Below are positions 7,789-56,000 of a stretch of 64,000 bases of DNA, piece by piece. Position numbers and translations under genes: made by a program. The DNA is taken from the NCBI RefSeq assembly GCF_000143415.4, contig NW_003314433.1:87352-151351 (forward strand), given 5' to 3'. A model generated the notes under the pieces. It was not told the DNA's origin. It did no database searches and was given only the letters and a program-made list of their open reading frames with translations. Positions within the stretch are counted from its first letter, which is position 1. The number at the start of each line of letters is the position of its first letter. The DNA is from Selaginella moellendorffii. Its lineage: Eukaryota; Plantae; Lycopodiophyta.

Positions 7789-7927
7789 GCATATCCCGAG
7801 CTGCATATCCAGTGATTCAAAGCAAAGTTCTCACCCTTATACCCCCCTTTGATGATAGTCGGGCAATTATCACACCACTATTCTTCCATGTCTTGTGTGT
7901 CTCTAGTCGACCAACCAGAGTATAAAA
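7789..7927 (+). promoter_or_regulatory. PHO1-like promoter: two P1BS motifs (GNATATNC) plus TATA box
   Basis: GCATATCC at 7789-7796 and 7803-7810; TATAAAA at 7921-7927. Same arrangement in copy B (27768, 27782, ~27900). Lies upstream of the SPX ATG. Confidence 0.6.
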
Positions 7928-22411: not shown

Positions 22412-22446
<35 letters not shown>

Positions 22447-25150: not shown

Positions 25151-25540
25151 GTGATGAGGATAACCCTTGAGACATTGCCTTGGATTGCTCTTCCAGGAAG
25201 AGGTCGAAGAGCAAGAAAACAATGAGGAAGCACCAGACAGATCCATTCGAGGTATAGAAACTCTGAGAAGGAATTTGTGTGGAGCGACTCTTGAATGTTC
25301 TTTGCAGATTTCTATGTGAACGGAAGATCCCTTTTACGATTCGGCGGTATCTCCGAATGAGAGAGTGGTCCTCTTCGTGCGTTTCTAAGAGGCTACGAGA
25401 TTGGGGAGGATTCTTGGAAGAGACAAGTTGGAAACTAGAGAAAAATCTCAAAAGATTCGTGGGATACTATGCATATGCTTTTAGGGTTCTTTGTAGATTA
25501 GCTAAAGGAGAAAATTCGCTAGGGTTTTCTTTCATTTGTA

Positions 25541-26830: not shown

Positions 26831-28774
26831 GTTAAGTTCTTCTTTCTGATGCATTATTTTCTTGCTGGTGCATTCCAGACGAAGAGCTGAATTATCGCTT
26901 GACAACCGCCGTGTGTTTCAATATAAGGTGGCGTTCTTATCGCTTTGTTTTGGTGGAGTTATTCAGCTTTGCTTCTCTTACAGGATGACATGCCTTATGC
27001 GAGTGTATTACGAATCCACGAAACGTGGCTTGATGGTTATGCGGGAAGATCTTTGGTCCTAATGTAGGAGGCACAGCCAACGGTAGGCGAAAAAATAAGC
27101 AGGGACGAGTCATCGTCCAGGTAACCAAATATATTCCAGGTTTGCTGAGATTGATATATGGTGAAGAAAAACGAGACAAATGCGCACTCAGTGATGGAGC
27201 CCGTAGTGCGACGATCCATGGTCGAGGTCGACTTACAACGCGTTGATAAGTTCTACACTTAATGGAATGGCATGTGGATCCAAACGCACACGCGTGATCG
27301 ACATTTGCGACAAGACGAGGGTATGTTTACGCATTTATACTCATTCATTCATGGTGTAGAACAGGGTGACATCAGGATCAAAAGCGAGAATAAGATACAC
27401 TCAGGTCGGAACGACAGGGATCAAACTCATCAGTAGCAACGGAGAGGTTTGTATTCTGGATTTAAATCGCGTCTCTCAGCAAGCTTTCGATGAACAGCAA
27501 ATGGAAGGAGAAAAAACCCGGCGGGTTGGGGTCCACGTCGTCAACAAAACGATGCGGATCAATGTTAAAAACCCACAGACTGGTACGTGCAATGCTTTAC
27601 AGCCAGAAGTTTTGGCTTTCTTAGCGAAGAATCGTGCAGAATCTGGCAAGGAAAAGGAAAAGTATAATCGGGCCACTAACAAGGTGGAGCATCGCGAATG
27701 GAAGATAAGCTAAAATGCATTTATTTTCGTTCTCTTTCTTTCTCCGTGGTATGGGGGACTTCTCTCAGCATATCCCGAGCTGCATATCCAGTGATTCAAA
27801 GCAAAGTTCTCACCCTTATACCCCTCTTTGATGATAGTCGGGCAATTATCACACCACTATTCTTCCATGTCTTGTGTGTCTCTAGTCGGCCAACCAGAGT
27901 ATAAAATGCGACCACCACCTTCATTGCAAACTCCCCCTGCTCCCTCTTCCTCTCGCAGAAGGAGAGAAGGCTCCAAGTTTTTGAGTGAGCAAAGGGCTCT
28001 CACCTCGAGAACTCGACAAGCTCCCTCGATTCCAAGCTTGGCTCCTTCGGTTATTCTTCTCCTCTTCGTCCCCTTGCAAGAGTAAGTTTTTTCTTTGCTT
28101 TCGTAGTTCTGAGCTTGCGATTCTTTCAGTTTGGTTGCGCCAGCAATCGGGATTCCGACGAAACAAAACGCTCCATAAGCGTGATTTCCAGAAAGAGTAC
28201 GTGCATCGCTTCCTTCCATGCTTTAGATGCTCAAATGATTCTTTCATTCCCTTTCGCTCGCATAAATTACTCGTGTTGACAAGAAAAGAGTTGAAGTGTG
28301 TGAGAGTGTGTGTAAGTGTGTAACTTACGACAGCTTCTTTTCATGTAGATTCCCCTGCATTCCCTGTCCTTTTGTTTCCTTTTTTAGTTCCATAGGCCAA
28401 TGGATCGCTTGCTTCTTCGCTCCTCTTGCACTCTGCTGCGTCAGTTTCTCTCAGGAAAACGTATTCTTATGTAATTGTTCGCTGGCGTCGGTGAGAAACG
28501 AAGGCTTTCCCCCTTTTTTCCAGAGATGATCTTAAGGCGCTGTTTTCTTGTGAGAATTGGTGCTCCTCCCCAGCACAATGCATTTGATGATTCCACGCCA
28601 CCATTTGTCTCGTCATATGCTCATTGCCACTGTTCTTTTTCTGCTTCCAGAGCACAGGCGCCAGAAAAGTTTGAAGAGGCATTCTGAACTTGACACCATT
28701 TCCTCCAGGTATTTCATCTCTTGCTTGATCGTTTTCTTGACGATGTTCGCCTCAGGTAATCCAAGCTTTCAGAC

Positions 28775-29656
28775 ATGGTGAAGTTCCAGAAGCAGCTGGA
28801 GGGCCAGCTCGTCCCAGAGTGGCGGGTGAAGTACTGCGACTACAAGCAGCTCAAGAAAGTTGTCAAGAGAATCAAAAACCAGATCCTACACAGCAGCACA
28901 AGGTGTTCGATCCAAATGTCTTCTCGGATGACAAGAGCAAGCTTCAAAACTTGCTGCAAAATCCCAGCGCCATCCTGAGCAGCTGCTGCGAACAATCCAT
29001 ATCCTCGGAAACGTCCATGGATGTTCTGGACTGTAAAGACGAAACAAAACTCTTCAATACGATGAGGTTGTGCACAAGACGAGAATTGCAGATGGCGAGG
29101 ATTTTTAAGAGAAGGAGCTGTTTGGAACTCGATCGGATCACGAAAAGAACTTCTTTTTCGGCCTTGACGATCAGCTCAACAAAGTGGACAAGTTTTTTAG
29201 ATGCAAGGAAGACGAGTACGATGCTCAAGCACAGCAACTTCACATCCAAATGGAAGAGCTCATCGTTATGCAAGGTTTGTTATAGCAGCCTCTAAATCTG
29301 TAGCACTTAACTTGGAATCGTTTGACGTCTACCATGTTGTAGATGACGAATGTCAGAGCTTGAATAACAAAGGAAAGGTTCAGCGAGCATCCAAGATGCT
29401 CCAGACGGCCTTTGTCGATGCAATCCCTCCAGGTAGTAAAGTTTATGGACCGCGCAGAGAGAGTGTTCACTCTGCACTTTACGAAAGGCAACCGAAAGCA
29501 AGCCAGGCCCATACACTCTGCGAGCAATCATGGAAATATAAACTTTATCCATTTCATGCATTCGGATCGTCGTTATTAATTAACCTTCTATCACCATTGA
29601 TGATAGGACGCAGAGATTGTATACTAGTAGTTTCATGGCAATGGCATTGCCTCTAG
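28775..29656 (+). pseudogene. PHO1: PHO1-like SPX fragment (copy 2)
   Basis: Same N-terminus as 8799, with an early frameshift and internal deletions. Confidence 0.85.
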
Positions 29657-36124: not shown

Positions 36125-37079
36125 AGTCTTTGTTAAATAAAACTAAAATCATAGATATATCTCAATGTAAAATACCTTTGTAAATCCATATTGTTTTATA
36201 ATCCAAGGTTATAGGATGGATATTAAAATATTTAGCCATGATTGTCTTTTAGTCAATTTCTTTCACAATTTTAGTTTTCATATCGAAATGTCATTAATAT
36301 GAAATCATTTGATTAGTTTTTCCTTCACTTGGATTATTAAAAATTCAATACTGAAATAAACTTGAAACATTAGAATAAACATGAAATAATATTTTAGAGC
36401 AATAATGCAAACTTACCTCATTGACTTCTATTACAAAATATAGCCTAATCATTCCAAAGACATATAACAATAACTATATAAAGCATATTTATTTACCTTC
36501 ATCTTGCCAAATCACCTTGTAAAAATATAGATTGATGATCTGCTTTAGAATGGTGTTTGTTAAATAAAACTAAAAATTTAAATGTTAAATACCTTTGCAG
36601 ACCTATATTTTTCTTTCTTCTAGGATTATGAGATGAAGAGCAAAACATATAATTAATGATTTACTTTAAATGCCCTACATAGCGTTTGTTAGATAAAACT
36701 AAAAGCATGGATATATTTCAATATAAAATACCTTTGTAAATATATATTGTTTTATCATCCAAAGTATGGGATAAAAAATAAATTATTTGGTAGTTTTTCC
36801 TTCATTTAAAGCATTAAAAATTCAACACTGAAATGAACTTAAAACATTAGAATAAACAGGAAAGAATAATTTGGAGTTATAATGCAAACTTACCTCATTA
36901 ACTTCTGCTATAAAATATACCCCAATCATACCAAAGACATATAATAATAACTATATAAAGCATATTTATTTACCTTAGTTTTACCAAACCACCTCATAAA
37001 AATTTAAATTGATGATCTATTTTAAAATGGTGTTTGTTAGATAAAACTAAAAACTTAAATATTAAATACCTTTGCAGAC

Positions 37080-40000
37080 TCATATTTTTTTTCCCTCTAA
37101 GATTGTGAGATGAAGAGCAAAATATTTTTCCATGATCATCTCCTGCTTTTCTTCTTTCTCAAATTTAGTTGTCACTAGCTTAAATATCTTTTGTACATCT
37201 TCTACTTTGGGATTTGTAGTTAGTTTGCTTTTGAGAAGAAATGAATCCAAAAAACTTATGAGGCTTCCCTTGATTTCGTCTACTATTGCATTCACAGTCT
37301 CTCCAACACCAGCAAAATGTCCTCCAACTTTAGCCCCAATAAATAATAGAATCAATGTATATTTAAATACTGGAGCAAATTTCTTGAGCCAGTTTGGTGG
37401 GAGATCCACTTCAATACCTTCAGAACTCTGCACTTGATGAGCTTTAAAAGTTCCTTCAAGCTATTCACACAAGTAGTGAAGTTTAACATGTGTTCCCAAT
37501 ATTTTGTTGTAATTTTTCCACCTATTATTCTCATCAAGAATATATGGATATTTTGGGCAATCTATCTCCAATTTCAATAATACTTGCAAACACTTTGTAT
37601 GGATTGCATTCACTTTATCCATGATAGACTTTAGTCCATTTTTGAGCTCGTTAAGGATTACTTCAATGTCATCAAGTTTTGTATCCAACTTGTCAAAACG
37701 GTTCTCCATTTTATCAAACTTCTTATCAAAATATCTGAAGATTGCATTGAGTTTTGAGTCTTCAATATTCGGAAACTCAACAACATCTGATGATACTTTG
37801 GGAATTGTGACTTCTCCAACCTCCTCATAGTCCTTCAAAAATTCATAAAGTTCAATAAACTTCTTTACCCCTTCATGTTTTTGCTCGTTAGGCATCAATA
37901 GCTTAGCCAAAGCATTCTCATCTGAGACTTTCAAATCGTTAATCACATCCCAACTCTCTACTTCATGTGAATCATTCCAAGTGTGAGAGTAGTCTAAACC
38001 GCTTTCTCTTGCTTCACATTTGACTTGTTTTAATGGATAAATAACTGCATCCCATGATTTTGGTTTGCCCACATTATTTAGTATCCTTCTCCACACATAA
38101 CCAATATTCTTCTTGCAATAGTGTTGGCATTATCAACTCTTTGGGCAAGTTATGCCAATTCCCATCCCATGTATCATCCCTAGGCAATATCACTCCCATC
38201 TCATGGAGCACTCCAAGAATGTACTCCACTATTTTGTCTTGGTTCCCACATTGTTGCTTCAACTGATGTTTAACTCTGTGTGTTTCCATTTGACTTTTGA
38301 GTTTGCTTGTCTCAGTATGTATGAAGAGTTGCACCACATCCCTCATAAACCATTGGACATCTAAGATGACAAATTGAGACACAATGTCGTCCTCTTCATG
38401 TCCCAAGCCAAAGTAAATTGCATCACCAGAATCATGTGGAAATTGCAAGACGAATTTGAGAACATTCTTGGAACTCCTGTGAGGCAAAAGGATTTTGCCA
38501 ACTTTATCTAGGGGTATGACCTTCTTGTGACTTGGATCTTGTACCAATTTCCTCTTTGCTTTGAGACATTCCCGTGGTATTTGTTGCTGGGCTGACAGCA
38601 GTTCTTCCAAGCAACTCCCCAACATGGTTTTTATCCCCCTTAAATCTTTCACTCGAGTGGCCACCACCTCAAAACAAAGATCTGTCCCAAACTCAAGTAC
38701 TTGCCCATAGCCTTTGTCAGAGATTATTGCAGAAACCACGTCCTTTGGGTCATAGTTGCATTTTGGAGTGAAAAAATTCAAGGCAATCAAGACCTTGGGC
38801 TTCCTTTTGGGTGAGGCTGATTGATGTGAAGCGATGAACCTCAGCCAGTAAACCAAATTCTGCTTGAAAACGTCACAATTGTCATCCTCCACCTTGCATA
38901 CGATCAAGAAGAGATCCTTCTCACTTCCTCTAAGAAAGTACTGGTGGAAAACATGGAACTCTTCCTGTCCAGCCAGGTCGCAAATGAGTAGCTTTTGTTT
39001 GGTGGTTGCATAGACAAGTGGTTGCAGCTCAATGCCTGCTGTTGAAGCATGCCTTTGGAGACATGATGGAAACCAAGACACTCTGCGGCAGAGGTTGTTT
39101 TTTATTGTGGTTTTTCCAACCCCGCTAGCACCACACAAGAAGAGCTTTGCTGTTGACGGGTTGTCAAAGTCTTTGAATGCACTCTGCTGGAAGATTGCAT
39201 TCCGCTCTAAAAGACCAGAACACCTCTGCTTGAAAGCTTCAGAAGCTTCGGAATCATTGCCTATATCAAGCTCTTCCACGAGGCTTTGGTAGTTTTCCTC
39301 CAGGGCAGCCAGAATTTGTCTTTTCTGTGCATCACTTCCAAGATCAGGAGCCCTGAATCTGCGCACCTTGCATTTTGGATCCCCCAGCAACTGGCAAAGA
39401 TCTTCCAGCTTTTCAAAATTTGGCTGAGATATTCTCAAGTCTTCAATGCTGCTTCCCAAAAGGCACCTCCATGGCAGTTCCGAGTCACATATCAAAGATT
39501 TCAGATACTTGCACCTGGTGATAGCTTTCCAAAAGAGCTCCCCATTCGTGATTTTGCACTCCGATATACCCAAATGCTCCAGTTGGCTCTTCTCTATGCC
39601 CTCGGCAAACTCCAACGTTAACTCATCTTCTCCTCCCGCGCTACCCCATATTTCCAAATGGCGCAGCTTACAATGTGGACTTGAGAGAGCTGACCACAGA
39701 CTGCTGTCCCAGACCATTCCTCCTCCCTCGTTGGGACAATCAAGGTTGAGCTTGATCAGCTTGCAATTGGGATTTTGTAGCGCTTTGCCCAACCATCCAC
39801 CACCATCACCTGGATAAAGTCTAACGCTGAGTTCCTCCAAGCCACACTTAGCGCTGCTCAGGGCCTCACCCAGGCCCGTTGCATTGCTCAGGTCCTCACT
39901 CTGTCTCATTCTTCGGCAATCTAAAACTGAGAAGCTGGTGCCCTCCTGAAGAGCCTTGCATACCCATGGCAACACTCCAGCATCAGTATCCCGAGATAGG

Positions 40001-40953
40001 TCTAGTCTTTGCAGTGAACAGTTTGGACTAGTGAGTGCCTTGAAGAGTGCTTCACCTGCCTCCTCTGGAAATGATGCCGTCAGTTCTACTAGCTTATTGC
40101 AAATGCCATTCTGAAATGCCTGTTCCCACCCTTCCTTGCCAATGTCCTTATCTAGGATGGCTAACTCTTCCACCTTGCACTCCTGACTTGCCAGATCCCT
40201 ACTCAATTTCCCAAATCCTTCCACTGTCATCCTGTTCGAAGCCAAGGCGAGACGTTTCAAGTTGTTTCCTGGTTTCCTAAGGAGTTGGCTAAGGAGAGTC
40301 TCTGGGTTCCCAACCTTGTCCAACCCGAGCTCTGTCAAGCAGTCGAGCTGAGCAAAGGCCAACTCAAGCTCCTGAGGTGGTGTGAGGATGTCTTTGCCTT
40401 CCCAATAGATACCTAGCCCTTTCAAGACTTTGAATTCCTCTGTCATCATCAGTAGCTTTGCAAACCTCTGCACCTCAATCTGGCCAATATCTTGTCCCTG
40501 CTGAGGAGGAGCAATGCCCTCTGCCACCCTTTGCATCCGATCACTGGGAATGCCCAACCTACAAGCGACCCTGGCAGCGAAGTGGATGAATCTGATGTCG
40601 AGCTGTGGTACCAAAGCGGCCTTGAGAATGTCAATGTGAGCAGCAGCAGCAGCAGCAGACGAACTGCCATCACCAGGAGCATCTCCCACATCCAGAGCCC
40701 TGTCTAAACTGGGTGGATTTGAAATGCACCAGTTGAGCACACCAACCAGATCCTCCTCTGTGCCTCCAAAACTCTCGACGGTAGCACTCACCTTATCAAC
40801 AAACTCGCCTTCGGATAGCTCCAGCCTCGAGAAAAGCCCACAAGAAAAGCCAATCGCATTGAAGTGCCGCTTGTTGTCCCGCTTCGCTGCGAGAGCCTCC
40901 TTGATCTCCTTGACAGAGCCACAGCTGATCCACACTCGTCGCTCCTCCTCCAT
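37080..40953 (-). pseudogene. TORNADO1-like LRR-Roc-COR, copy 2; 959-aa ORF (38074-40953) followed by a broken C-terminus
   Basis: LRR and Roc intact (GASGVGKT, DLAGQEEFH). A deletion in COR joins LQEEY to the YVWRRIL region out of frame, and there is a stop at LCE*. Confidence 0.88.
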
Positions 40954-41183
40954 GGAAGTTTGCCCTGGATCGAAGGGTATTTACAGGTATTCCCAGAGGT
41001 ATGGTGAGTCCTTTCTTCACTATTGAGAGTGGCCCTGTGCCACGTGGCTAGTCCACGTGGAGAGACACGAGTCTTCACCGGTTCACCATGTGACACATAT
41101 GTACATTTTCCATTCCATATATGCTATGACGGATCTTGAGCACCATCACACGGTTTCACCTTTCGTTAGATGGTATCGGAGCA

Positions 41184-41324
41184 ATGCCTGGGAGAGCGCA
41201 AAGAATACGAAACCGTAGGATCAGGGCGACACTCGCTAGGGTGAATCGGAGCCTCCGTCTACGTAGACAGAGGCGTGCCCTAATCCAAGCGCTCCAGGCC
41301 TTGCAAGAGGCACTGGACGACTAA
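41184..41324 (+). CDS. Putative 46-aa Arg-rich leader ORF of the outer copia
   Basis: ATG begins 2 nt after the PBS ends. MPGRAQRIRNRRIRATLARVNRSLRLRRQRRALIQALQALQEALDD. Stop is ~50 nt before the gag ATG. Confidence 0.5.
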   Translation: MPGRAQRIRNRRIRATLARVNRSLRLRRQRRALIQALQALQEALDD

Positions 41325-41373: not shown

Positions 41374-42624
41374 ATGGCAGCCACTGTTCCTACAAATCCG
41401 CCTCCAAATCCACCACCTATTTCCCCTCCCATCACAAATCCGACTGTGCCTACAGCGGATATCATTTCAGTGGACGCAAATCCACCAAAATTTGATGGGA
41501 GGAACTGGCGCTTCTGGAAGACAAAATTCGAATCCTATATGGATGAACGAGGCCTCTGGGACATCACCACAGGAACTGAGACACTTCCAGATACAGCTAC
41601 AGTGGATGAAACTGCGAAGTATCGCAAGAAGGACCGGAGAGCTTTGGGCAAATTCCATGCAGCGCTGGAGGGGCGAGAATTCCATTGCATTGGACGGTGC
41701 AAGAGTGCAAAGGAAGCGTGGGAGGCCATGAAGCAGACTTACCAGATCCCTTCAACATCCCATCGCATATTTTTACGGAAGCAGCTTCATGCATTGGTGA
41801 TGGTTGAAGGGGATGATCTCAAGGATCATCTTGCTGGTGTGAGAACCATCTTAGATGATCTTAAGGATGTAGGTGCAAACATAGAGGATGAAGAAGAAGC
41901 AGAGCTGGTGCTCGTCACACTTCCTCCATCCTTTGATCCTCTCATACGTAGCCTCACTACCACTGGAACTCCTCTAACCCTGAATGGCGTGATCAGTAGC
42001 CTCCAGGACGATGATCTGAGACGAAGAGCAACAACAGGATCAGAGGCCGTTGCATTCTACTCTTCTCTCAGGAAAGAAACAGTGAACAAAGGGAAACAAG
42101 GAGCCTCTTCATCCAAGAAGCCCAAGTGTTCTCATTGCAACAAGAAAGGCCATGACGAAGCTCAATGCTGGGTGAAAAATCCATCTCTCAAGCCTGTAAG
42201 GAACAATGCAAAGAAAAAGGTGGTACACGCCTTCATCTTGTCACGAGCTATGGCTGTGGCAGCACTGTCTGCAGAGTGCATCTACCTGGATTCTGCTGCC
42301 ACAGACCATATGTTCAACAGTGATAAGTACTTTGAAGCCTATGTTCCTACAGCCACAGAGGAGTATGTCATCGTTGGCAATGCCCAGCAGCTTGCTGTGA
42401 AAGGAGTTGGAACCATCAAGTTCACTTTACCACAAGGAATAGTCGTAAAGATCCACGAGGTTCTTTATATTCCTGGTTTATGTGCTAATTTGTTCTCTGT
42501 GGGACAATTTGCTGAGGATGGGTATCAGTTCGCCATTACACCTCGCCAATTCCAGCTGATCTCGACCACAGGAGCCATCCTCACAGCGTCCCGGCCTGGA
42601 CGGCGTGACCTCTACCGCCTTACC
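41374..42624 (+). CDS. Outer copia Gag-protease (5' part of polyprotein)
   Basis: PKFDGRNWRFWK; zinc knuckle CSHCNKKGHDEAQC; protease YLDSAAT. Joins 47375 in frame once the nested element and one TSD are removed. Confidence 0.93.
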
Positions 42625-42892
42625 TGTGGTATTATGAAACGGTGTTGTGTTATTATTATGACGGTTGATACATGGTTAAATGTATGGGTTTATCGTGACG
42701 ATCCGTGGCGGCGTCTGGATCGCTCACGTGGCTGTGTGCTGACGTGGTCTTGTTCACTCCCACACTCCTCCTCAAGGCCAACGTCTAAGGTCAGCCCAAG
42801 TGCCTTCGTGAAGACTTCATGTTTAACACGAGGAAGTGGTTTTGTTAGCACGTCCGCTAGCATGGAGTTTGTCGGGCAGAACTCCAGCTCGA

Positions 42893-45800
42893 TCATTCCT
42901 CTCTGGATCTGGAGTTCTTGGTCAAAGCTATTGCAGACTGGTTGTCACACAATAGCTTGACCACGCCCGTGTTGATTTGTAGATCCTGGAGAAGTCCCTT
43001 CAGCCACGCTGCTTCCTTGGTTGCAGCTGCTGCAGCTATGTACTCAGCCTCGGTACTCGACATCGCTGTAATAGCCTGTCGTTTGCTGCACCAGCTTGCG
43101 ACATTTCCATTTAGCAGGAAAACGTAGCCTGTGGTTGACTTCCTGTTGTCTGGATCCCCGGCCCAATCAGCATCAGAGTAACCAGCCAGCTTGTTGCCGC
43201 TCTCGCCTCTGGAGTACTTTAAACTTAGCTGGTTAGTCCCTGCCACGTACCTCATAATACGTTTCAAAGCCTGCCAGTGTGCTGTGGAGGGACGGTCCAG
43301 GTACTTCGCCACTGTTCCCACAGCATACGCAAGGTCAGGCCGAGTGGAGATTACCAGGTAGATCAGGCTGCCGACCATAGAGCGATAGACTGCTCTAGAT
43401 GCTTTCTCCTCCTCGGGAGATTGATCAAGGTACTCTCCACTCTCAGCAGATAATTTCGTGCCTGTTTCCATGGGAGTAGCAACCGGATTAACATGAGCAA
43501 GGCCATACCTCTGGAGCACGTCGGAAACATATTTTGCCTGGCTTAGCTCCAGAGTGCCTCGTTCCCTGTTGCGCGTCACCTGGATACCGAGGCAGAAATG
43601 CAACTCACCGAGGTCTTTCATGGCAAATTTAGCGCCAAGGTACGTTTTAAATTTGTGGATCAAACGTAGCTGATTTGCCACGAGAATAGCATCGTCCACA
43701 TATAGCGCAAGGAACAAATAGCCCTCAGCGTCAAAATATATGTAGAGGTTACAATCAGCAGCACTGCGCACGAAACCAAGGGAAATTAGAAAAGAATCTA
43801 TTTTCGTGTACCATTGGTGCTTGAGTCCGTAGAGAGCTTTGTTAAGCTTGCAAACGAGGTGTTCTTCTCCAGGCTGGATAAAACCAGGAGGCTGAGCCAT
43901 ATACACCTCTTCATCGATGTCGCCGTTAAGGAACGCAGTACAAACGTCAAGTTGATGGAGCTCGAGATCCAATTCTGCAGCTAAGATTAGTAGCATACGA
44001 ATGGTTGTGAGTTTCACCACCGGGCTGTAAGTCTCCGAGTAGTCCAGCCCATGAACTTGAGAAAATCCGCGTGCCACAAATCTCGCCTTGTAGCGCTCAA
44101 TGCTTCCATCAGCGTTGTACTTTTTCTTAAACAACCACTTGGATGAGACGAGCTTTCTGCGAGCTGGAAGTTCAACCAGCGACCAAGTGTTGTTTTTCTG
44201 GAGAGAATCATACTCCTCCTGCATAGCTGCCTGCCAGTGTTCAGCTTCTGGTCCATGTAGAGCCGCTTGGGGACCGAGAGAGGCAGGTGGAGCCGACAGA
44301 GCCCAGAAGTAGGCACGCTTTCCTATAGGCATCGCCTCCTTGGCTTTAAGAGATGGTTTCACGACACGACCCGAGCGTGTCACCACTGCTGTGCCGGCTG
44401 GAGGAGGTGGTAGCTTGGGAATGCTAGGAGGAGTGGTGGCATCTTGATATAACTCGTCGCCAACGAACAGGTCAGCCACAAGCGTGGAAAGATCTGGCTG
44501 TTCATTGGTGCTTGAGGATGCAGCCGCTGTGGCCTGTGGAGTCGTCAGAGGAGGTGTCGAAGGAAGAGAAGTACCGTGATCAGCTCCTCCTGCCAGATCG
44601 CCTCCTTCGGGCGCTCCTTCAGCAACTCCTCCTGGCTCTGCAGCGGCTGGATTGTCTGGTGCTGGGTGGAGATGTGGAACGTCGTCCAAAATCTCAGAAA
44701 GATCCACCAGAGATGGTGGAGAAACAGGAGGGAGTCTCAGGGTATCTCGATAAAGACGAGCTTCATCAAACACCACATCTCGGCTCACCACCAGTTTCCT
44801 GCGCTGGCAGTTATAGAGTCGATAGGCTTTTACCTGGGTGTGATAGCCCATGAAGATGCATTTCTCGCTCTTGGGATCCAGCTTCCGCCGCTGAACATCG
44901 GGGATGTGGGCGTAGGCTATGCAACCAAACACCCTCAAGTGCCCTAACTTGGGGCGCTTCCCAGTCCATACTTGAAACGGCACCTGTCCTGTGGAACGTG
45001 TTGGCAGCCGGTTCCGGAGGTACACTGCTGTGTTGAGTGCCTCTCCCCAAAACACCTTGGGCATGCCAGCGTGCTGGAGAAGGCAGCGTACACAGTCCAT
45101 AAGTGTCCTGTTCAGGCGCTCGGCGACCCCATTCTGCTGCGAGGTGTGGGCTGCGGTGTACTCGTGGTGGATGCCAGCCTGAGCAAGAAATGCCAGAAAC
45201 TCCTTGCTCATATACTCACCGCCGCCATCTGAACGTAGTGTCCGGATGGTACAGCCAGTGGCATTTTCTGCCCAGCTTTTGTAGACCTGGAAGTGATGGT
45301 AGACCTCTCCCTTGTGTGCCATGAGAACAGCCACCGCATAGCGTGAGTAGTCGTCAATGAACGAAACGAAGTACCGCTTGTGACTGAGAGTTGCTTCTGG
45401 CACATGGCACACATCCGTGTGTACCAGCTGAAGAAATCCTGAGGCGCCATCTTCTGGACTTCTGCGTGGAAAGGGTAGTCTTGGCTGCTTCCCCAGTTGG
45501 CACGTCTCACATACTCCCAGTTGGCTGGCACCGGTGAGGGTAAAGTCATCAGCAAGCTTGTGGCTAGCAAGTAGCTGGATGTCGTGAGAATTGGCATGCC
45601 CTAGCCGAGCGTGCCAGAGCTGGAGAGAGTTGGCAGCCCAGGAGCTGGGGCGAATTGCAAGCAAATGCCCCTGCTCGTGAGTTGAGAGGATCAACTGAGC
45701 ATTGAGCTTGTAGAGAGTCTCAGCTCGTCTACCAAAAGCTACTGGATGGCCAGTCTCGTCAAAGATGGTGCATCCGTCTGCGTTGAAGAGTGTTGAGAAG

Positions 45801-46960
45801 CCTTGATCTGCTGCTACACCAACTGAGAACACTGTCTGTCCTGCTTCTGGTACGTAGTAGACCTGGTTCACGAGCTTCTCAGCTCCACTCTCCAACTTTA
45901 TGACCGTTCCTTGTCCTTCCACTGTTAAGGGGCGTTTGTCTCCTACAAAGACTTGCTTCTCCTGCTCCAGTGGCCGGTACTTGTGAAAAGCTCTCTTCAA
46001 TGGTGTGAGGTGCATCGAGGCTCCAGAATCCATCCAGAGCACTTCGGCTTCGGACACAGTGGATGAAGATGCAGCGAGCGTCATCATCAACATCGTGTCA
46101 GGTTGGCGTGAAGAAGAGCTTCTTTCAGCGCGAGCTTTCTCTGCGGCTTTCTTGATCCGGCATTCACGCTCCACGTGGCCAGCTTTGCCGCAGTAGTTAC
46201 ATGGGCCCTTGCGTTTTTTATTGGTTGCAAATCCAGGGCTGGGAGAAGGGCTCTTTTGTCCTCGAACAGGGCCATCTCGTTTCTTCCCACCCGATTGCTT
46301 TCCCATGATCAAGGCCTGCTCCACCCGAGCAGCCTGAGAGGGCGCCTTTTGTCTCCGCTCGTTCTGCTTTCGTTCTTCCTCGATCAGGTCCGAGTAGAGC
46401 GAGTCCAAGTCCTTTCCAGGTACAGCCGAGAGCATCGATGCGAAAGGTTGGAGATCAGGGGAGACAGAGCTTAGAAGGAATGCCTTAGCTTGGTCAATGG
46501 TGATTGCCGCTTCCGCGTCCTTCAGCTCGGTGATCATCGCTTTAAACTTTCCAATGTAAGTGGCCATGGTGTCATCAGGTTGCATTCTCATCGTGAAGAA
46601 CCTTTGTGTTAGCACCACCTTAGCATTGGCAGCTTTGGCAGCGAAGATTTGTGTAAGGGATGTCCAGTTCTGGTGGGCTGTTTTGGTAAGATCAAGGAGA
46701 TGAACGAATTCATCCCCAAGACCTAACCCGATGACAGAGAGCGCTTTTCGATTCTTGGAGTCCCAGTCGAGCCGTTGGGTTACATCCGCAGCAGCCGGAC
46801 GTTGAGTCGTTCCATCCACTATAGGCCAGCAGTCCTTGGCCAAAAGGATAAGCTGTACTTTTGTTTTCCAAGTGGAGAAATTCTGTCCCGTGAACTTTTG
46901 GAGAAGTTTCTCCCAGCCCCCAGAGTCCCAAGAATTTCCTGCTGCGTTAGCAGAAGACAT
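42893..46960 (-). CDS. Inner copia Gag-Pol polyprotein; RNase H tail broken by a deletion/frameshift
   Basis: CNYCGKAGHVEREC, WMDSGAS, LWHARLGH, VHTDVC..RSDGGGEY..QQNGVAER, LYVDD, YSDADWAGD. The expected H.RTKHI segment is missing and the tail ADVLTKPL is in another frame (42690-42896). Confidence 0.95.
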   Translation of the reverse strand: MSSANAAGNSWDSGGWEKLLQKFTGQNFSTWKTKVQLILLAKDCWPIVDGTTQRPAAADVTQRLDWDSKNRKALSVIGLGLGDEFVHLLDLTKTAHQNWTSLTQIFAAKAANAKVVLTQRFFTMRMQPDDTMATYIGKFKAMITELKDAEAAITIDQAKAFLLSSVSPDLQPFASMLSAVPGKDLDSLYSDLIEEERKQNERRQKAPSQAARVEQALIMGKQSGGKKRDGPVRGQKSPSPSPGFATNKKRKGPCNYCGKAGHVERECRIKKAAEKARAERSSSSRQPDTMLMMTLAASSSTVSEAEVLWMDSGASMHLTPLKRAFHKYRPLEQEKQVFVGDKRPLTVEGQGTVIKLESGAEKLVNQVYYVPEAGQTVFSVGVAADQGFSTLFNADGCTIFDETGHPVAFGRRAETLYKLNAQLILSTHEQGHLLAIRPSSWAANSLQLWHARLGHANSHDIQLLASHKLADDFTLTGASQLGVCETCQLGKQPRLPFPRRSPEDGASGFLQLVHTDVCHVPEATLSHKRYFVSFIDDYSRYAVAVLMAHKGEVYHHFQVYKSWAENATGCTIRTLRSDGGGEYMSKEFLAFLAQAGIHHEYTAAHTSQQNGVAERLNRTLMDCVRCLLQHAGMPKVFWGEALNTAVYLRNRLPTRSTGQVPFQVWTGKRPKLGHLRVFGCIAYAHIPDVQRRKLDPKSEKCIFMGYHTQVKAYRLYNCQRRKLVVSRDVVFDEARLYRDTLRLPPVSPPSLVDLSEILDDVPHLHPAPDNPAAAEPGGVAEGAPEGGDLAGGADHGTSLPSTPPLTTPQATAAASSSTNEQPDLSTLVADLFVGDELYQDATTPPSIPKLPPPPAGTAVVTRSGRVVKPSLKAKEAMPIGKRAYFWALSAPPASLGPQAALHGPEAEHWQAAMQEEYDSLQKNNTWSLVELPARRKLVSSKWLFKKKYNADGSIERYKARFVARGFSQVHGLDYSETYSPVVKLTTIRMLLILAAELDLELHQLDVCTAFLNGDIDEEVYMAQPPGFIQPGEEHLVCKLNKALYGLKHQWYTKIDSFLISLGFVRSAADCNLYIYFDAEGYLFLALYVDDAILVANQLRLIHKFKTYLGAKFAMKDLGELHFCLGIQVTRNRERGTLELSQAKYVSDVLQRYGLAHVNPVATPMETGTKLSAESGEYLDQSPEEEKASRAVYRSMVGSLIYLVISTRPDLAYAVGTVAKYLDRPSTAHWQALKRIMRYVAGTNQLSLKYSRGESGNKLAGYSDADWAGDPDNRKSTTGYVFLLNGNVASWCSKRQAITAMSSTEAEYIAAAAATKEAAWLKGLLQDLQINTGVVKLLCDNQSAIALTKNSRSREE

Positions 46961-46997
46961 TCTATCTATTAATCTAAGAATAGATTAAACAGAGAAT

Positions 46998-47204
46998 TTA
47001 GAAAGGACGGCGTGGAGAAGAATCGTGAAAAACTCGGCCGCAACAAGGGCACACCATCCGGCAGGCTGGGCAAAGAGCTTGTTGGCGCTTTCGGTCCTGG
47101 ATCTTCCGCTCCACCCGCGCCAGCACTGCCAAAGCCCTCGCGCGCTCCTGAGCCAAGGGTTCCTGGCCCCTTTGATTCTTCATCTGCCACTGTCCTCTTG
47201 CCAT
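46998..47204 (-). CDS. Putative 68-aa leader ORF of the inner copia (basic helix plus CxxC-x3-CxxC)
   Basis: ATG ~14 nt after the PBS. ..ERARALAVLARVERKIQDRKRQQALCPACRMVCPCCGRVFH... Stop is 37 nt before the gag ATG. Confidence 0.5.
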   Translation of the reverse strand: MARGQWQMKNQRGQEPLAQERARALAVLARVERKIQDRKRQQALCPACRMVCPCCGRVFHDSSPRRPF

Positions 47205-47374
47205 TAGATCGTTCGCTGCTCCGATACCATGTGGTATTATGAAACGGTGTTGTGTTATTATTATGACGGTTGATACACGGTTAAATGTATGGGTTTATCG
47301 TGACGATCCGTGGCGGCGTCTGGATCGCTCACGTGGCTGTGTGCTGACGTGGTCTTGTTCACTCCCACATTACC

Positions 47375-50206
47375 ATGCTGCCAGATCTTGCTGGACGGAG
47401 TCTGGGCCTACACGCACAAAAGACAACGACCAGTCACTCACTGGAGCTTTGGCACGCACGCCTGGGGCATCCTAGTGCTGATAGAATCAAGCAGCTCACA
47501 CGCGAGCAGATGGTTGAAGGTCTAGACCTGGACCCAAGAGCCGTTCTTCCATTTTGCCAGGGCTGTCAGCTAGGAAAATCTACTCGCCAACCTTTCCCCA
47601 AGACTGGAGCATCTCGAGCTACAGAGCTCATGGAACTTGTACACACTGATGTGTGTGGCCCGATGGCCACCACAGCAGTGGGAGGTATCCAATACTTTAT
47701 CAGTTTCATTGATGACTACAGTCGTCGCACTATGATCTACCCTATGGCTCGCAAATCCCAATCGTTACACTACTTCCAGACTTTCAAGGATATGGGAGAA
47801 ACACAAACTGGGAAAATGCTCAAGCGATTGAGAAGTGATGGTGGAGGCGAATTCACTTCCAATGCTTTCAACCAGCTGTGTGAGCAAGGAGGGATTGTGC
47901 GAGAACTTACAACGCGAGAGACTCCACAACAGAATGGCGTAGCTGAGCGCAAGAATCGCACACTAGTGGAGAGTGCTCGGGCAATGCTACTTTCCAGTGG
48001 TTTGCCTCGCAGCTTCTGGTTTCACGCTGTCTTGACGGCGAACTATCTCCAGAACCGGCTCCCCACCTCTGCCCTTGCTGACATCACTCCTGAAGAAGCA
48101 TGGAGTGGCAAGAAACCTACAGTTACGCATCTGAGAATATTCGGGTGTGAAGCGTGGGCACACATCCCTGATGGAATGCGCAAGAAATTGGATCCCAAGA
48201 GCCAGAAGGCTGTGTTTGTGGGCTACAGCCTCGATCACAAAGCCTATCGTCTCTGGAATCCAATCACGAAGCAGGAGATCCTGAGCAGAGATGTGGTTTT
48301 CAACGAGAATTCGTTTCTTCCTTCTAGTCAAGGTTCTACTTCCAGACCTACCTTGACCGAAGAAAATGACGTTGAAGCGGAACAAGATCAGTTGACTGTC
48401 GGCACGATCACTGTGCCGCTTCAAACAGTCCCTACACAACAACCCATGCCCGCTTCTACTCCAACACCACCAACCCCGCCGCCTCCTCCAGATCCTCTAC
48501 GCAGATCGATCCGCACAAGGCGGCCTACTGAGCGTCTCATCGAGACAATGGTCTCCTCTCGTGCAGCTGGGACTCCTACTGTTCCGAGGACCTATGGAGA
48601 AGCCATGGCCTCACAGGAAGCGTCTTACTGGCGTGTAGCAATGGAAGCCGAGATTGCTTCACAGCAAAAGAACGAGACACATGTTCTTGTTCCAACTGTG
48701 CCTTCCAATCGCCAGATTATCAAGAGCATGTGGGTGTATGCTCTGAAGCTTAATCCTGATGGCTCGGTTCGCTACAAGGCGCGATTGGTGGCGAAAGGAT
48801 GCTCGCAAGTTCCTGGACTTGACTACAACGACACCTTTGCTCCAGTGGTTAAGCATTCTACTCTTCGTTCCTTGATTAATTTTGCTGCGGTGGGAGACTT
48901 TGATCTGGAACAGATGGATGTGACCACGGCGTTTCTTTATGGCGCGCTTGAAGAAGAAATCTATATGGCACAGCCAGAAGGATTTCTAGCCGCTGGAAAA
49001 GAGGATCATCTCTGGCTTCTCAAGAAAGCTGTCTACGGCTTGAAACAAGCACCCAGATCTTGGTACAAACGCTTTGACGATTTTATACTAAGTGTGGGCT
49101 TTTCCCGTAGCGAGGCAGACCCGAATCTTTATATTCAGGTGGAGGGTGAATCATTTGTGATCATCGCTCTTTATGTTGATGATACTCTTGTCATCCATAA
49201 CCATCGCTTAATGTTTCTCCAGGTTAAGCCAGATCTTTGCAGCCAATTTGAGATGAAAACTCTTGGCTCGGCTTCCTACTTTCTTGGCATGGAACTTGTG
49301 CGTGATCGCTCTCAACGCACTATCTATCTTCACCAAGCCAAGTATATAGAAGAGATGCTGGCCAGGTTTTCTATGACGAGCTCTAATCCAGTGGCGACAC
49401 CAATGGAACTAGGCTGCCAGCTTTCACGAGCCATGTCTCCTGAGACAGAGGACGACAAGAGAGCCATGGACTCCATCCCTTACAGACAAGCTGTTGGCAG
49501 TCTCATGTATCCAGCTGTTTGTACGCGCCCAGATATTTCTTTTGCCGTGAGCAAAGTTAGCCAATTCCTGGCTAATCCTGGATCTCAACATTGGGCAGCG
49601 GTGAAACGCATCTTCAGGTACCTTCGAGGTACTACTTACCTTGGATTGTGCTACCAGGGAAAAGCGCTTACCCTCACGGGCTACTGTGATGCTGATTTTG
49701 GGGGAGACTGTGACACACGCAAGTCCACCTCTGGCTATTCATTTTCCCTGGGCAGTGCGACAGTCTCGTGGTGCAGCAGGAAGCAAAGTACAGTGGCAAC
49801 CTCTAGTACTGAAGCAGAATATTTGGCAGCCTCACAAGCTACCAAAGAAGGTGTGTGGTTACGCTCACTACTTTCTAACCTTGGTGTGAGTGTGAAGACT
49901 CCCACTCGCCTCTTCTGTGACAATCAAAGCTGCATTGCGTTAGCGGCCAATCCTCGCTTTCATTCACGCACCAAACACTTTGGGATTCATCATCATTTTG
50001 TTCGTGAGAAAGTGGAAGATGGCACAATTGAGCTGATCTACTGCGACACGACCACTCAGGTTGCAGATATCTTCACAAAAGCACTACCCCGAGATCGATT
50101 TCAAGTCCATCGCGAAGGGCTGGGACTTTCTCCACTGATGAGCATCACTCGTGATGGCCACAGTGCCAGTGGGAGTGTTGAGAGTGGCCCTGTGCCACGT
50201 GGCTAG
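47375..50206 (+). CDS. Outer copia integrase-RT-RNase H (3' part of polyprotein)
   Basis: LWHARLGH, VHTDVCGP, RSDGGGEF, PQQNGVAER, YKARLVAKG, LYVDD, YCDADFGGD, ADIFTKAL. Confidence 0.96.
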   Translation: MLPDLAGRSLGLHAQKTTTSHSLELWHARLGHPSADRIKQLTREQMVEGLDLDPRAVLPFCQGCQLGKSTRQPFPKTGASRATELMELVHTDVCGPMATTAVGGIQYFISFIDDYSRRTMIYPMARKSQSLHYFQTFKDMGETQTGKMLKRLRSDGGGEFTSNAFNQLCEQGGIVRELTTRETPQQNGVAERKNRTLVESARAMLLSSGLPRSFWFHAVLTANYLQNRLPTSALADITPEEAWSGKKPTVTHLRIFGCEAWAHIPDGMRKKLDPKSQKAVFVGYSLDHKAYRLWNPITKQEILSRDVVFNENSFLPSSQGSTSRPTLTEENDVEAEQDQLTVGTITVPLQTVPTQQPMPASTPTPPTPPPPPDPLRRSIRTRRPTERLIETMVSSRAAGTPTVPRTYGEAMASQEASYWRVAMEAEIASQQKNETHVLVPTVPSNRQIIKSMWVYALKLNPDGSVRYKARLVAKGCSQVPGLDYNDTFAPVVKHSTLRSLINFAAVGDFDLEQMDVTTAFLYGALEEEIYMAQPEGFLAAGKEDHLWLLKKAVYGLKQAPRSWYKRFDDFILSVGFSRSEADPNLYIQVEGESFVIIALYVDDTLVIHNHRLMFLQVKPDLCSQFEMKTLGSASYFLGMELVRDRSQRTIYLHQAKYIEEMLARFSMTSSNPVATPMELGCQLSRAMSPETEDDKRAMDSIPYRQAVGSLMYPAVCTRPDISFAVSKVSQFLANPGSQHWAAVKRIFRYLRGTTYLGLCYQGKALTLTGYCDADFGGDCDTRKSTSGYSFSLGSATVSWCSRKQSTVATSSTEAEYLAASQATKEGVWLRSLLSNLGVSVKTPTRLFCDNQSCIALAANPRFHSRTKHFGIHHHFVREKVEDGTIELIYCDTTTQVADIFTKALPRDRFQVHREGLGLSPLMSITRDGHSASGSVESGPVPRG

Positions 50207-50325
50207 TCCACGTGGAGAGACACGAGTCTTCACCGGTTCACCATGTGACACATATGTACATTTTTCATTCCATATATGCTATGACGGATCTTGAGCACCA
50301 TCACACGGTTTCACCTTTCATTAGA

Positions 50326-51264
50326 TTCACACCTTGTCCGACGTTGCAAAGTGAGAGTTTTCGACCATCTTGAGGTAACTGCCAGACTCCAGTCACCTGA
50401 AAATTTAAATAACCTTTTTAGAAGTCCGCAGTAATTTTCCATTTTCCATAAGTACCTTGTCATATTTCTTGCGGATCTTGACGAATGCCATCACGTTCAA
50501 GGAGCTGCCAAGTGAGTTTTCAACACTTTGAGAACATGGATCAATCGTATAGAGGTCATTCACCTGAAGTTTCTTAGGAGTCGAAGCCCACGATAAAATT
50601 CGACAAAGGCCGTCTGGAGCATCTTGGCTGCTCGCTGAACCTTTCCTTTGTTGCCAGGCTCCCCTTCAAGCTCTGAGATTCGTCATCTACAACATGGCAG
50701 AGATCAAACGATTCCAAGTTAAGTGCCACAGAATTAGAGGCTGCTAGAACGAACCTTGCATAGCGATGAGCTCTTCCATTTGGATGTGAAGTTGCCGTGC
50801 TTGAGCATCGTACTCGTCTTCCTTGCATCTAAAAAACTTGTCCACTTTGTTGAGCTGATCGTCAAGGCCGAAAAAGAAGCTCTTTTCGTGATCTGATCGA
50901 GTTCCAAACAGCTCCGTCTCGTAAAAATCCTCACCATCTCCAATTCTCGTCTTGTGCACAACCTGATCGTATTGAAGTGTTTTGTTTTGTCTTTACAGTC
51001 CAGAACATCCATGGACGTTTCCGAGGATATGGATTGTTCGCAGCAGCTGCTCAGGATGGCGCTGGGATTTTGCAGCAAGTTTTGAAGCTTGCTCTTGTCA
51101 ACCGAGAAGACATTTGGATCGAACACCTTGTGCTGCTGGTTCTTGGTATGTAGGATCTGGTTTTTGATTCTCTTGACAACTTTCTTGAGCTGCTTGTAGT
51201 CGCAGTACTTCACCCACCACTCTGGGACGAGCTGGCCCTCCAGCTGCTTCTGGAACTTCACCAT
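50326..51264 (-). pseudogene. PHO1: PHO1-like SPX fragment (copy 3, inverted)
   Basis: Reverse complement of 8799-9737; [28 protein letters not shown]. The P1BS/TATA region is removed by the 52051 junction. Confidence 0.88.
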
Positions 51265-52224: not shown

Positions 52225-52451
52225 TGTGAGACACAAAATTCCTAGGCCCCAAAGTGGAGCCCGAAGGGTGCCATGTGGTAGTGGCCGAAGCGAAAGCCAA
52301 ACGAGTGTAACACGTTTGGGCCAAAAGCTCCGACTTGAAAGGTCGAGAGCAGGAGTGGAACTCCTAACGAAGTGCTCAAGGAATGAGCACAAGGCGAGCA
52401 ATAAGCGAGGCTCCAAAAAGGGACCTAAAAGGACCAACACATGACACGTGG

Positions 52452-53056
52452 AGGAGTCTGAGATGGAGTCCGAGATGGACCCGAGGTGGAGTCCGAGATG
52501 GACCCGAGATGGAGTCTGAGGTGGACCCGAGATGGACCCGAGATGGAGTCCGAGATGGAGTCCGAGATGGACCCGAGGTGGAGTCCGAGATGGACCCGAG
52601 ATGGAGTCCGAGATGGACCCGAGGTGGAGTCCGAGATGGACCCGAGATGGAGTCCGAGATGGACCCGAGATGGACCCGAGATGGAGTCCAAGATGGAGTC
52701 CGAGATGGACCCGAGGTGGAGTCCGAGATGGACCCGAGATGGAGTCCGAGGTGGACCCGAGATGGACCCGAGATGGAGTCCGAGATGGAGTCCGAGATGG
52801 ACCCGAGGTGGAGTCCGAGATGGACCCGAGATGGAGTCCGAGATGGACCCGAGATGGAGTCCAAGATGGAGTCCGAGATGGACCCGAGATGGAGTCCGAA
52901 GTCGAGACCGAGACCGGGACCGAGACCGAGACCGAGATCGGGACCGAGACCGAGACCAAGGCCGAGACCGAGCCCGAGCCCGAGTCCGAGTCCGAGTCCG
53001 AATCCAAGTCCGAGTCCAAGTCCGAGTCCGAGTCCGAGTCCGAGTCCGAGCCTGAG
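52452..53056 (+). repeat. Minisatellite in the 5' LTR: 11/12-mers (GAG[A/G]TGGACCC, GAG[A/G]TGGAGTCC) then hexamers (GAGACC, GAGCCC, GAGTCC)
   Basis: Directly visible; explains the low-complexity six-frame ORFs here. Confidence 0.95.
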
Positions 53057-56000
53057 AGGGTGAAAGCCCAAAGCGTTCGTCTCCCAGACCCTGGGGGGTT
53101 TGGTGAGCTCCAAAAGTATAGTAGGGGGAGGACTGCAGTGGAGCCAGTTTGGCCCAGGAAGGCCGGACCCAGTGTTGGGTGATGAGCTGCCCACTGGGAA
53201 GTCCAAGACTAGAGTGAACACGGACCGACAAGCGGGGTAGCTTGGTGAAGTGTTCAAGAGCCGGCTCTAGTTCCCCCGGGAGATCGACTGGCCGATGCTC
53301 CTAGTCCAAGTGTGGGTGGCACTACCTACTTGGATACCTGGTGTGGCTCAACGGAACCCGCTCTAAGCCCATGGCTAGAGCACCCAAGGGCAGAAGGCGA
53401 GGAGAGTACCCAGGTGGCTTGCGTAAGGCCACTGTGTTTCGAAATGTTGTCCCAAAGGCCCAGACTGTGGAAAGGAAGAGGAGCAGTCCTCTGGGGTAGT
53501 GACCAAGGACACAGTCGTGTGGTGAGGAAGTCCCAGAGGACCGTGGGACTTAGTGGTCGGGCCTGTGGGTCTCAATCCAGTGGCAGTGTTGGCAAACACG
53601 GCCAGGGGCAGAAAGGGACTTAGTGGGGACTGACAGAGGGATATTGGGGAAGGCTATTCCCCTTGTCGGTGGGCATCCTAAGGATGCTAAGGAGTGGATC
53701 TCAGATGACCACTCACGGATGGTTTGCCTAGTCTTGGAGAGCCAAGACTGTGATGCAAGTGGTAATGGACTACCAGCGTGGCAAAGGTGATTGGGCATGG
53801 CCTTAGCGTAACAGACTGCCATGTCGGTGGTACCTTTGAGTGTCGGTCATGGGATCGGACACGGGGAGCACTTGGACCAAGTGCAAATGTTGAGTGGCAT
53901 GGATGCCATTCTCAGGGCTAGCAAGTCCCAAGTCCTGGATTGGACTTATGGAGGTTGTGAATGAGACTCCTCCAAGTGGTCGGAGGTGTGGTTAAGTGAC
54001 TAAAGTAGAATGGAAAATTTAGTCCCTTACAATTTGGTATCGGAGCTGTTCCTTAGTCCGACTTTTATTGGTGCTCAAGTATATCACCACTGGTGTTGGC
54101 AACGGAAGGTCTGAGAAGTGGGCCTATCCTTGAGGAGTAGTAGGTCGGGAAGACATGGCTCTCCATTACAGTTCATGTGTGAACTTGTAGACAAGGTGGT
54201 GGATAGAAAAGGGGCCAATAATGGAACGACTTTGGGATCTTGGGAACAGTGCAAGGTTTTCCTCATTGAGTTGAGGAGGTGATCCAGATGAGCGTTTGAC
54301 TCAGCAAACGGGCTAATGTAGTTGGGGTAAACAACTATAGTTGGGATCACAGGGAAGATAGAGACTCCAAAAATAATAAAGGAGTCACAAGTTTATCCTC
54401 ACATGGTTGAGGCTGGTGCTCATGAAGGTGAGACCGGAATGGATGACCGTGAGAGGTCAAGTATGGATGAGGACACGAGTTCTCGAAATGGTAACCGGGA
54501 CTACCTCTAATAAATGCTGGAACAACCCAAGGAGTTGGGGGTGTATTAAGTGGATGAGTTGGTATTCTCATCACATGGACAAGTAGTCCTAAGGGGCAAA
54601 GGTTGCCCCCAGAGAACAAAATCAAGTGTCAGAGTAACACTTGTGAAAATAGTCCTTTTGAGTAGGACAGGAATGCAAGAAGTGTATTCAAGTGAGCTAG
54701 TGCCTCACAAGTGGGACCTTACGGGTCTGTGGATTAACCAAGTCCAAAACTGCTGGATGACTCAAGTAGAGTCAAGGAATGGTCCTAAAAGGACTAATGG
54801 AAGCATTTGGACTGTACCCCATGAAGGATGGAGGGGGGATCATAGGATCCAAGGATGAGAATAGAGGGTATCTTATCGATGGCAAAATGTGCCATGCTAA
54901 AGTCGTGGGAAAGGTGTTCCCAAAAAGAAAACAACTTTGACACAAAGTTGTGTGTGACCTCTATAATGCAGTGCTAATGAATGGTTGGCATGAGAAAGAG
55001 TGGTATCGGTTTTGGCAAAGACTTAGACACAAAGAAGAAGTGTTATAGAGGTAAGCTCGTAGAGCCGATGGTGTGGAGACACCAAAGGTGCCAATGTGTG
55101 ATACCTTGAGGCTATGTTGGTGGGTTCATGGGAACCCCTTGCCAAAGGAATCCCAATAGAAATGGGAATGGCATAGCCTAAGCTGCAGAGCATGCAGTTG
55201 GAGTGTGGTGACCCAGATAATGATGGAGGTGTGGAAGCACCAGCAATGAGTTGTAGGACTTGACAACTACAAGGCAACTAAGCAAGAGGTGCAAAATAAT
55301 TGGTTAAACGGGTAGAAGGTAGCTACCCAAGCCTTCTTAATGGCATAGGGAAGTTGGATATACCTTTACGGGGGATAAGTTACTTATGTTGTGATATAGT
55401 AAGTCAATGTCATAAAAGGAAATACTCATTGTCAAGGAAGCCGTCATTGGGACACCCGAACACTCTAAAACACCAGGAGGTGGTGTTTGATGTCGCGAGG
55501 GCAGTAGATAAGGCCTAAGGGACTAAGTCCCTAGCGAATGATGGATAGTAGGTGCTATCCAAATGTCCAAGGTGGCGGAGACAGGAGAAGACTGTCTACT
55601 CGAATTGGACAAAGCCAAAAATGGAATTTTGGCAAGGCTAGCGATGGGCATGCAAAGGCTCGTAAGCAACAACGTAATCCCGGTGTGTGGGATTATAGGG
55701 TGAGCATACATGGATTGAGGAACCACTCCCTAGGCTATCGGGTAGGTTCATCCCTAAGAATACTTGCTAAGGCATGATAGAAAGTGCAAAGCTATCCTCC
55801 TGGTCTGGAGGAGAATGACTGAAGGAAAGGTGTGAAGCCAAAAGGAAGAAGTAAGGGGATAGAACCAAACCATAGGAATCGAAGGGCATAACCAATGTTG
55901 GTTATGCCAGCTGGGAATGGAGAATCAAGTGGGGGCTCGAGGGTGTTGCCGCTAGCAACCGTGATGCCATGGAGAGTCGAAAATATGGAATTGTCCATGT

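Follow-up and report, generated by a model that had tools for sequence, protein, structure and literature searches.

Similar basic open reading frames precede gag in two nested copia retrotransposons of Selaginella moellendorffii

Two Ty1/copia retrotransposons, one inserted in the other, each have a long ATG-initiated open reading frame (ORF) between the PBS and gag, and the strongly basic peptides that these leader ORFs would encode resemble one another over 22 residues beyond what shuffled sequences of matching composition usually give. Both elements lie in a 64,000-nucleotide stretch of the Selaginella moellendorffii genome, which was analyzed as a whole and is referred to here as the window. 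Ty1/copia elements are taken to encode Gag-Pol only, and full-text literature searches found no account of a conserved copia ORF in the interval from PBS to gag. Judged from the sequence, the leader ORF is probably real and lineage-restricted, and it may represent a small gene, or an upstream ORF with a regulatory role, that has not been described before; it is seen so far in two copies.

The two elements and their surroundings

The outer element is on the forward strand. Its 150-nt 5' LTR (41021-41170) has 3 mismatches to the 3' LTR (50176-50325), and the flanking TSD, TTCAC, was read directly at 41016-41020 and, as its partner, at 50326-50330. A 12-nt PBS (41171-41182) abuts the 5' LTR. The gag-pol gene extends from the gag ATG at 41374 to 50206 with a single break, open on either side, and this break is the nested insertion of the inner copia. 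The Pfam domains, spread over the two halves, occur in the order Retrotran_gag_2, Pol_BBD / gag_pre-integrs, rve, SH3_retrovirus and RVT_2. The outer element is young and compact, at about 4.6 kb.

The inner element (42625-47369, reverse strand, 4745 bp) lies within the outer gag-pol and has LTRs of 140 nt with 1 mismatch (42625-42764 and 47230-47369) and the TSD TTACC (42620-42624 and 47370-47374). Its 12-nt PBS (47229-47218) abuts the 5' LTR and is identical to that of the outer element. The inner gag-pol (42690-46960, with the gag ATG at 46960) has all its Pfam domains within one 1355-codon frame and in copia order; one frame-disrupting break is present near the 3' end, and the last RNase H residues carry on in another frame. 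This element is also young and compact, at ~4.7 kb. By their domain order, paired LTRs, 5-bp TSDs and a PBS next to the 5' LTR, both elements are Ty1/copia.

The Gags of the two families were originally described as highly divergent and their LTRs as unrelated. The first description is right, with identities of 25% for Gag and 41% for Pol. The second is only partly right: the LTRs show no overall alignment (a fit as good is given by 101 of 1000 shuffles), yet LTR size and CCACGT motifs are common to both. The CCACGT motif, which has an ACGT core and is G-box-like, occurs twice per LTR, at positions 20 and 33 in the outer and 18 and 34 in the inner element, and this pairing looks like a shared promoter architecture. 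Because the PBSs are identical, the LTRs are all 140-150 nt long and the twin CCACGT motifs have matching positions, the two families are not fully unrelated.

A neighbor-joining tree of Pol (736 columns, 126 database copias) places both elements in one small group together with P0044 and P0097. Support for this group is weak (it comprises at most 20 tips in 24 of 40 bootstrap replicates), and by plain BLAST rank neither element is the nearest Pol relative of the other. All these sequences are ~47-50% identical over the 736 columns, and the radiation is therefore deep and poorly resolved.

The host-type content of the window is that of a streptophyte and comprises SPX domains, the DNA-binding domain of EIN3 and a tandem set of three LRR-Roc-COR genes. 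The GC content is ~50% in coding blocks versus ~28% in spacers. The three LRR-Roc-COR genes (ROCO, TORNADO1-like) are intron-poor and located at 12185-15610, 38074-40953 and 60608-63913; the outer copia is inserted between two of them, which puts it 63 bp ahead of the start codon of the middle copy. The middle and last ROCO genes lie within a duplicated block of ~3.5 kb whose copies are 23.1 kb apart. A separate segmental tandem duplication of ~19.8 kb (2-9224 and 19776-29190, 91-100% identical) contains an EIN3-like gene (approximate limits 4240-5350 and 23945-25100) together with an ORF for an SPX domain (8799-9329 and 28819-29295). Direct repeats with a 477-nt period, 83-87% identical, are present in the AT-rich spacers at 16428-17204 and 36314-37183.

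The window also contains a third LTR element of 7.7 kb (52225-59891), whose PBS at 54035-54046 has the same 12 nucleotides as those of both copias; the 12-mer thus has 3 matches in the window, against 0.16 expected. The LTRs of this element are ~1.8 kb long and packed with ~17 copies each of a 23-nt tandem repeat, and its empty site is visible at the paralogous ROCO locus, where 37183/37179 corresponds to 52224/59892. It is probably non-autonomous, since it has no long ORF, and no frame resembling the leader ORFs was found in it.

Layout of the leader frames and features of the peptides

The outer leader ORF (41184-41324, forward strand) begins 1 nt past the PBS and would encode 46 amino acids. 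The inner leader ORF (47204-46998, reverse strand) begins 13 nt past the PBS and would encode 68. Their stop codons are 49 nt (outer) and 37 nt (inner) upstream of the gag ATG. The original prediction, which had an ATG-initiated ORF right after the outer PBS, a second in the equivalent place of the inner element, and both ending shortly before gag, thus describes the two leaders accurately. In outer and inner element alike, gag is in the +1 frame relative to the leader ORF.

The leaders measure 191 nt (outer) and 257 nt (inner) from PBS to gag, compared with a median of 62 nt and a range of 3-228 nt in 19 metagenome copia loci whose PBS is within two substitutions of the window's own. Two of these comparators have long leaders, with ORFs of 18 amino acids or fewer. 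An ORF as long as that of the outer leader is present in 3.5% of shuffled leaders, and one as long as that of the inner leader in 1.3%. The GC content by codon position in frame follows the order GC1 > GC3 > GC2 in both ORFs, as in gag-pol. Codon usage is coding-like in the inner ORF (+8.6 bits) and ambiguous in the outer one (-4.5 bits).

In both elements an AUG is formed at the LTR/PBS junction, upstream of the uAUG of the leader ORF, and the latter is therefore not the first AUG. The inner junction AUG opens an 8-codon mini-ORF (47204-47230, reverse strand) whose stop overlaps the start of the leader ORF (UAAUG). The mini-ORF at the outer junction has 24 codons (41170-41244, forward strand) and overlaps the start of the leader ORF out of frame. 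A frameshift that would join the leader ORF to gag was considered for the outer element only and set aside: the gag frame opens only after the end of the leader ORF, and the two frames do not overlap.

The two peptides have the same net charge, +10, with 13 Arg among the 46 residues of the outer and 15 Lys plus Arg among the 68 residues of the inner peptide. AlphaFold2 models the outer peptide as a single helix spanning residues 4-45 (mean pLDDT 93) and the inner peptide as a helix over residues 16-43 and then, at 49-60, a small hairpin rich in Cys (mean pLDDT 74). The stretch that the peptides share is within the predicted helix in both, and this helix is not notably amphipathic. The C-terminal halves are unrelated, being a Leu-rich, heptad-like helix in the outer peptide versus a Cys-rich stretch in the inner one. 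The Cys-rich tail (46998-47070, reverse strand) resembles the first half of a C2H2 zinc finger and is possibly zinc-binding. The Leu-rich tail matches 0 of 10 CRM1 export-signal class patterns.

The leaders fold somewhat better than shuffled sequences (z = -2.3 and -1.9). A near-perfect 24-nt palindrome with a self-complementary center, a candidate RNA hairpin, occupies 41251-41274 (forward strand) within the Arg-rich codons of the outer leader ORF; no counterpart of it was found in the inner leader.

Similarity of the two peptides and search for further members

The ungapped alignment with 10 of 22 identical residues on which the original prediction was built is reproduced here, with a BLOSUM62 score of 47. 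The shared 22 codons are at 41217-41282 (forward strand) in the outer element and at 47073-47138 (reverse strand) in the inner element. Comparison with composition-matched shuffles had been proposed as a check, and the match exceeds the residue, dinucleotide and block nulls. A score of 47 was reached by 2 of 5000 residue shuffles of both peptides, by 0 of 1500 dinucleotide shuffles of both leaders when the best of nine frame pairs was taken (mean 26, sd 3.6), and by 4-21 of 3000 block shuffles that preserve local composition. The eight remaining real frame pairs of the two leaders score 28 or less, and the similarity is confined to the pairing of ORF with ORF.

In a six-frame search of the window the two peptides are each other's best non-self match, and the next matches score 46, 44 and 42. 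Six-frame translation of 632 kb of other copia loci gave a single match of 47, located outside any leader, which corresponds to about one equal score per 1.3 million residues. Since equal or near scores turn up in real six-frame DNA, a score of 47 alone is not remarkable genome-wide; composition-adjusted BLASTP between the peptides returns E = 0.54. That such a score should land by chance in the only leader of equivalent position, 257 nt long, has a probability of roughly 2-4 in 10,000, and nominal values of this kind are optimistic, because the pair was picked by eye, after looking, from the 64-kb window.

Over the shared codons, nucleotide identity is 32 of 66 (48%), and different codons are used at 7 of the 10 identical residues; a preserved block of DNA or RNA is thereby excluded. 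By codon position the identities number 14, 12 and 6 of 22, a pattern that is partly a by-product of having selected the best protein alignment.

Searches for further members extended from the exact peptides to distant relatives of the elements. Exact look-up of seven proteins of the window, both peptides included, found none of them in the protein collection, and a word search with the peptide alignment gave no match. A profile search of 1.84 billion representative proteins returned two matches, P0141 (35 repeats) and P0142. These were rejected as relatives of the shared stretch, as they are long zinc-finger repeat proteins that align only to the Cys-rich tail of the inner peptide. No named relative of the peptides, and no family of Rev or Tat type, was found in Pfam and PDB at E values up to 10. 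An origin from the N-terminus of Gag was likewise rejected, as the peptide profile has no match in 140 copia polyproteins. The whole window has no match in Rfam.

The elements themselves have no near neighbors in the collections. The inner Gag has no close relatives in the protein collection, where its best match is 26% identical, and the Pol search returned nothing beyond ~40-50% identity. In about 40 readable copia leaders a comparable leader ORF was found in none. Of 80 metagenome copia loci, 36-37 include the gag start and upstream sequence; their upstream frames score 34 at most against the two peptides, and none of these loci has an ORF rich in Lys and Arg beside gag. Among the nearest relatives by Gag or Pol, L001-L003 and L084-L092 have no leader ORF. 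The database copia nearest to the outer element in the Pol tree is P0044 (Logan SRR18067407). Its contig has a called frame of 87 residues (1-264) that runs in from the contig start without a stop and ends exactly where gag-pol (264-4457) begins; this could be a third leader ORF, one whose stop overlaps the start of gag.

Origin and possible role of the leader frame

Weighing these observations, it seems probable that one ancestral leader ORF, whatever its function, gave rise to both frames, an origin that is read from two sequences. The original prediction of an accessory peptide or conserved-peptide uORF holds insofar as two equivalent, unusually long basic ORFs exist and match above chance, but the lineage conservation that it assumed comes down to these two sequences and about 40 leaders are without the ORF. 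The preferred reading, adopted tentatively, is a cis-acting, peptide-bearing upstream ORF that limits the access of ribosomes to gag-pol. It is preferred because the observed anatomy, in which a long ORF ends shortly ahead of the main AUG, is all that it needs, and because the two peptides show no conservation in their C-terminal halves. Common descent and a role in cis are both favored by the same place and layout after an identical PBS and by the same +1 position of the gag frame in both elements. Also in their favor are the rarity of such long ORFs in shuffled leaders, the unusual leader lengths, a similarity confined to one frame pair and to the peptide level, the helix and charge common to both peptides, the codon-position GC order, the shared LTR architecture with the weak Pol grouping, and the P0044 frame. 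Against them, they are carried by two sequences only, and neither the profile nor the word searches produced a third; the BLASTP value, the chance scores of 42-46 in the window, the BLAST ranks, the weak tree support, the ambiguous codon usage of the outer ORF and the junction AUGs also count against them.

Under the preferred reading, two compact copia families of a streptophyte genome (element length about 4.6-4.7 kb, LTR length 140-150 nt) would have inherited the leader ORF from their common ancestor. Scanning along the genomic RNA, ribosomes would reach the uAUG just past the PBS, translate 46-68 codons that specify a very basic helix, and terminate 37-49 nt upstream of the gag AUG. Gag-pol would then be reached only by ribosomes that leak past the uAUG or reinitiate. 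Synthesis of Gag-Pol would in this way be held down, leaving RNA free for packaging and reverse transcription, and the polybasic nascent chain may add a slowing of the ribosome.

Coincidence is a serious competitor to these proposals, though it falls short of being the probable explanation. Two GC-rich (53-58%) leaders with open frames rich in Arg, Ala and Leu could produce an accidental alignment with no common descent or function. The pair was selected by eye, no search added a third member, real six-frame DNA yields scores of 42-47, and up to 0.7% of the shuffles preserving local composition attain the score; the BLASTP value and the codon usage of the outer ORF, which is not coding-like, point the same way. 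What chance would have to account for is the joint occurrence of two long ORFs (3.5% and 1.3%), their matching position, frame offset and net charge, and a similarity that is itself of the order of 1 in 1000, in leaders that are both far longer than is usual for copia. An RNA-level element of the leader, such as a structure for packaging, dimerization or tRNA interaction, with the reading frame incidental, is very improbable. The folding of the leaders and the position of the outer palindrome inside the shared stretch are what such an element would predict, but third codon positions are identical at the random level, the similarity is found in one frame pair only at 48% nucleotide identity, the palindrome has no inner counterpart, and no Rfam family was matched.

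Arginine-rich motifs of viral regulators bind RNA, and the peptides could accordingly be viewed as products that act in trans. The leader ORF would then be a third gene besides gag and pol. Its putative product, a small helix rich in arginine, would bind RNA of the element itself, and the C-terminal module would be swapped (a Leu-rich helix versus a zinc-knuckle-like tail) between families in a lineage of compact streptophyte copias. Its role would be in nuclear export, packaging, dimerization or chaperoning, or in targeting RNA or Gag to the nucleus or nucleolus. This gene is an unlikely one on present data. Its appeal lies in the Arg-rich content and equal charge of the peptides, the location of the shared stretch in a long predicted helix in both, the retention of particular residues beyond charge, the possible zinc-binding tail of the inner peptide, and the precedent of CERV, the RNA-export factor that the LTR retrotransposon Cer1 encodes for itself (PMC10309623). 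Weighing against it are the lack of any sequence relative or Rev or Tat family match in the databases searched, the unrelated C-terminal halves, a helix without notable amphipathicity, and Gags that in both elements already have a CCHC knuckle for RNA binding. The more specific Rev-like layout of the original prediction, an arginine-rich motif followed by an export signal, is not supported: the outer Leu-rich tail fits no CRM1 class, a Cys-rich tail takes its place in the inner peptide, and neither Rev nor Tat is matched. Of the features of a Rev-type regulator, a predicted Arg-rich helix is present, which is not diagnostic alone, whereas family similarity and a conserved export signal were not found.

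Conserved-peptide uORFs (CPuORFs) are known in plant mRNAs. The leader ORFs are like them in being short, in ending shortly before the main AUG, and in that the peptide rather than the nucleotides appears to be kept between divergent homologs. They differ in belonging to retrotransposon genomic RNA rather than host mRNA, in having a conserved part that is central and polybasic, and in a length of 46-68 codons that would leave little room for reinitiation. Measured as CPuORFs, both lie between PBS and gag, but with a junction AUG ahead of each uAUG, and the peptide similarity is above chance in the one available pair, with about 40 other leaders lacking the ORF.

Comparison with other systems gives partial likenesses. 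The leaders of plant pararetrovirus pregenomic RNAs are several hundred nucleotides long and contain many very short ORFs and a shunt structure (PMC5902531); because of this structure and the shortness of the ORFs, the sequence of the leader peptides is generally unimportant. The copia leaders, in contrast, have one long ORF downstream of the PBS, and their similarity is in the peptide sequence. The aORFs of plant LTR retrotransposons resemble the leader ORFs as extra frames besides gag-pol that recur in more than one family, but they lie between pol and the 3' LTR, in sense or antisense orientation, and are much longer (PMC7264820). Both leader ORFs are instead between PBS and gag, a position for which the same review describes no aORF in copia. 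CERV of the C. elegans element Cer1 is a large protein made from a spliced mRNA (PMC10309623). The leader peptides have in common with CERV and the Rev type that they would be small accessory products encoded by the element, and with the Rev type an arginine-rich helix. Unlike the Rev type, they lack an export signal, match no such family by sequence or profile and do not share a C-terminal module with each other, so that the likeness is one of arginine richness only.

If the leader ORF is conserved and translated, copia biology would gain a new accessory protein or else a switch by which the element limits its own translation. Such an ORF would also offer a way into the question of how translation and packaging divide a single genomic RNA between them, and it would suggest that small genes in the leaders of transposable elements are being missed by annotation pipelines.
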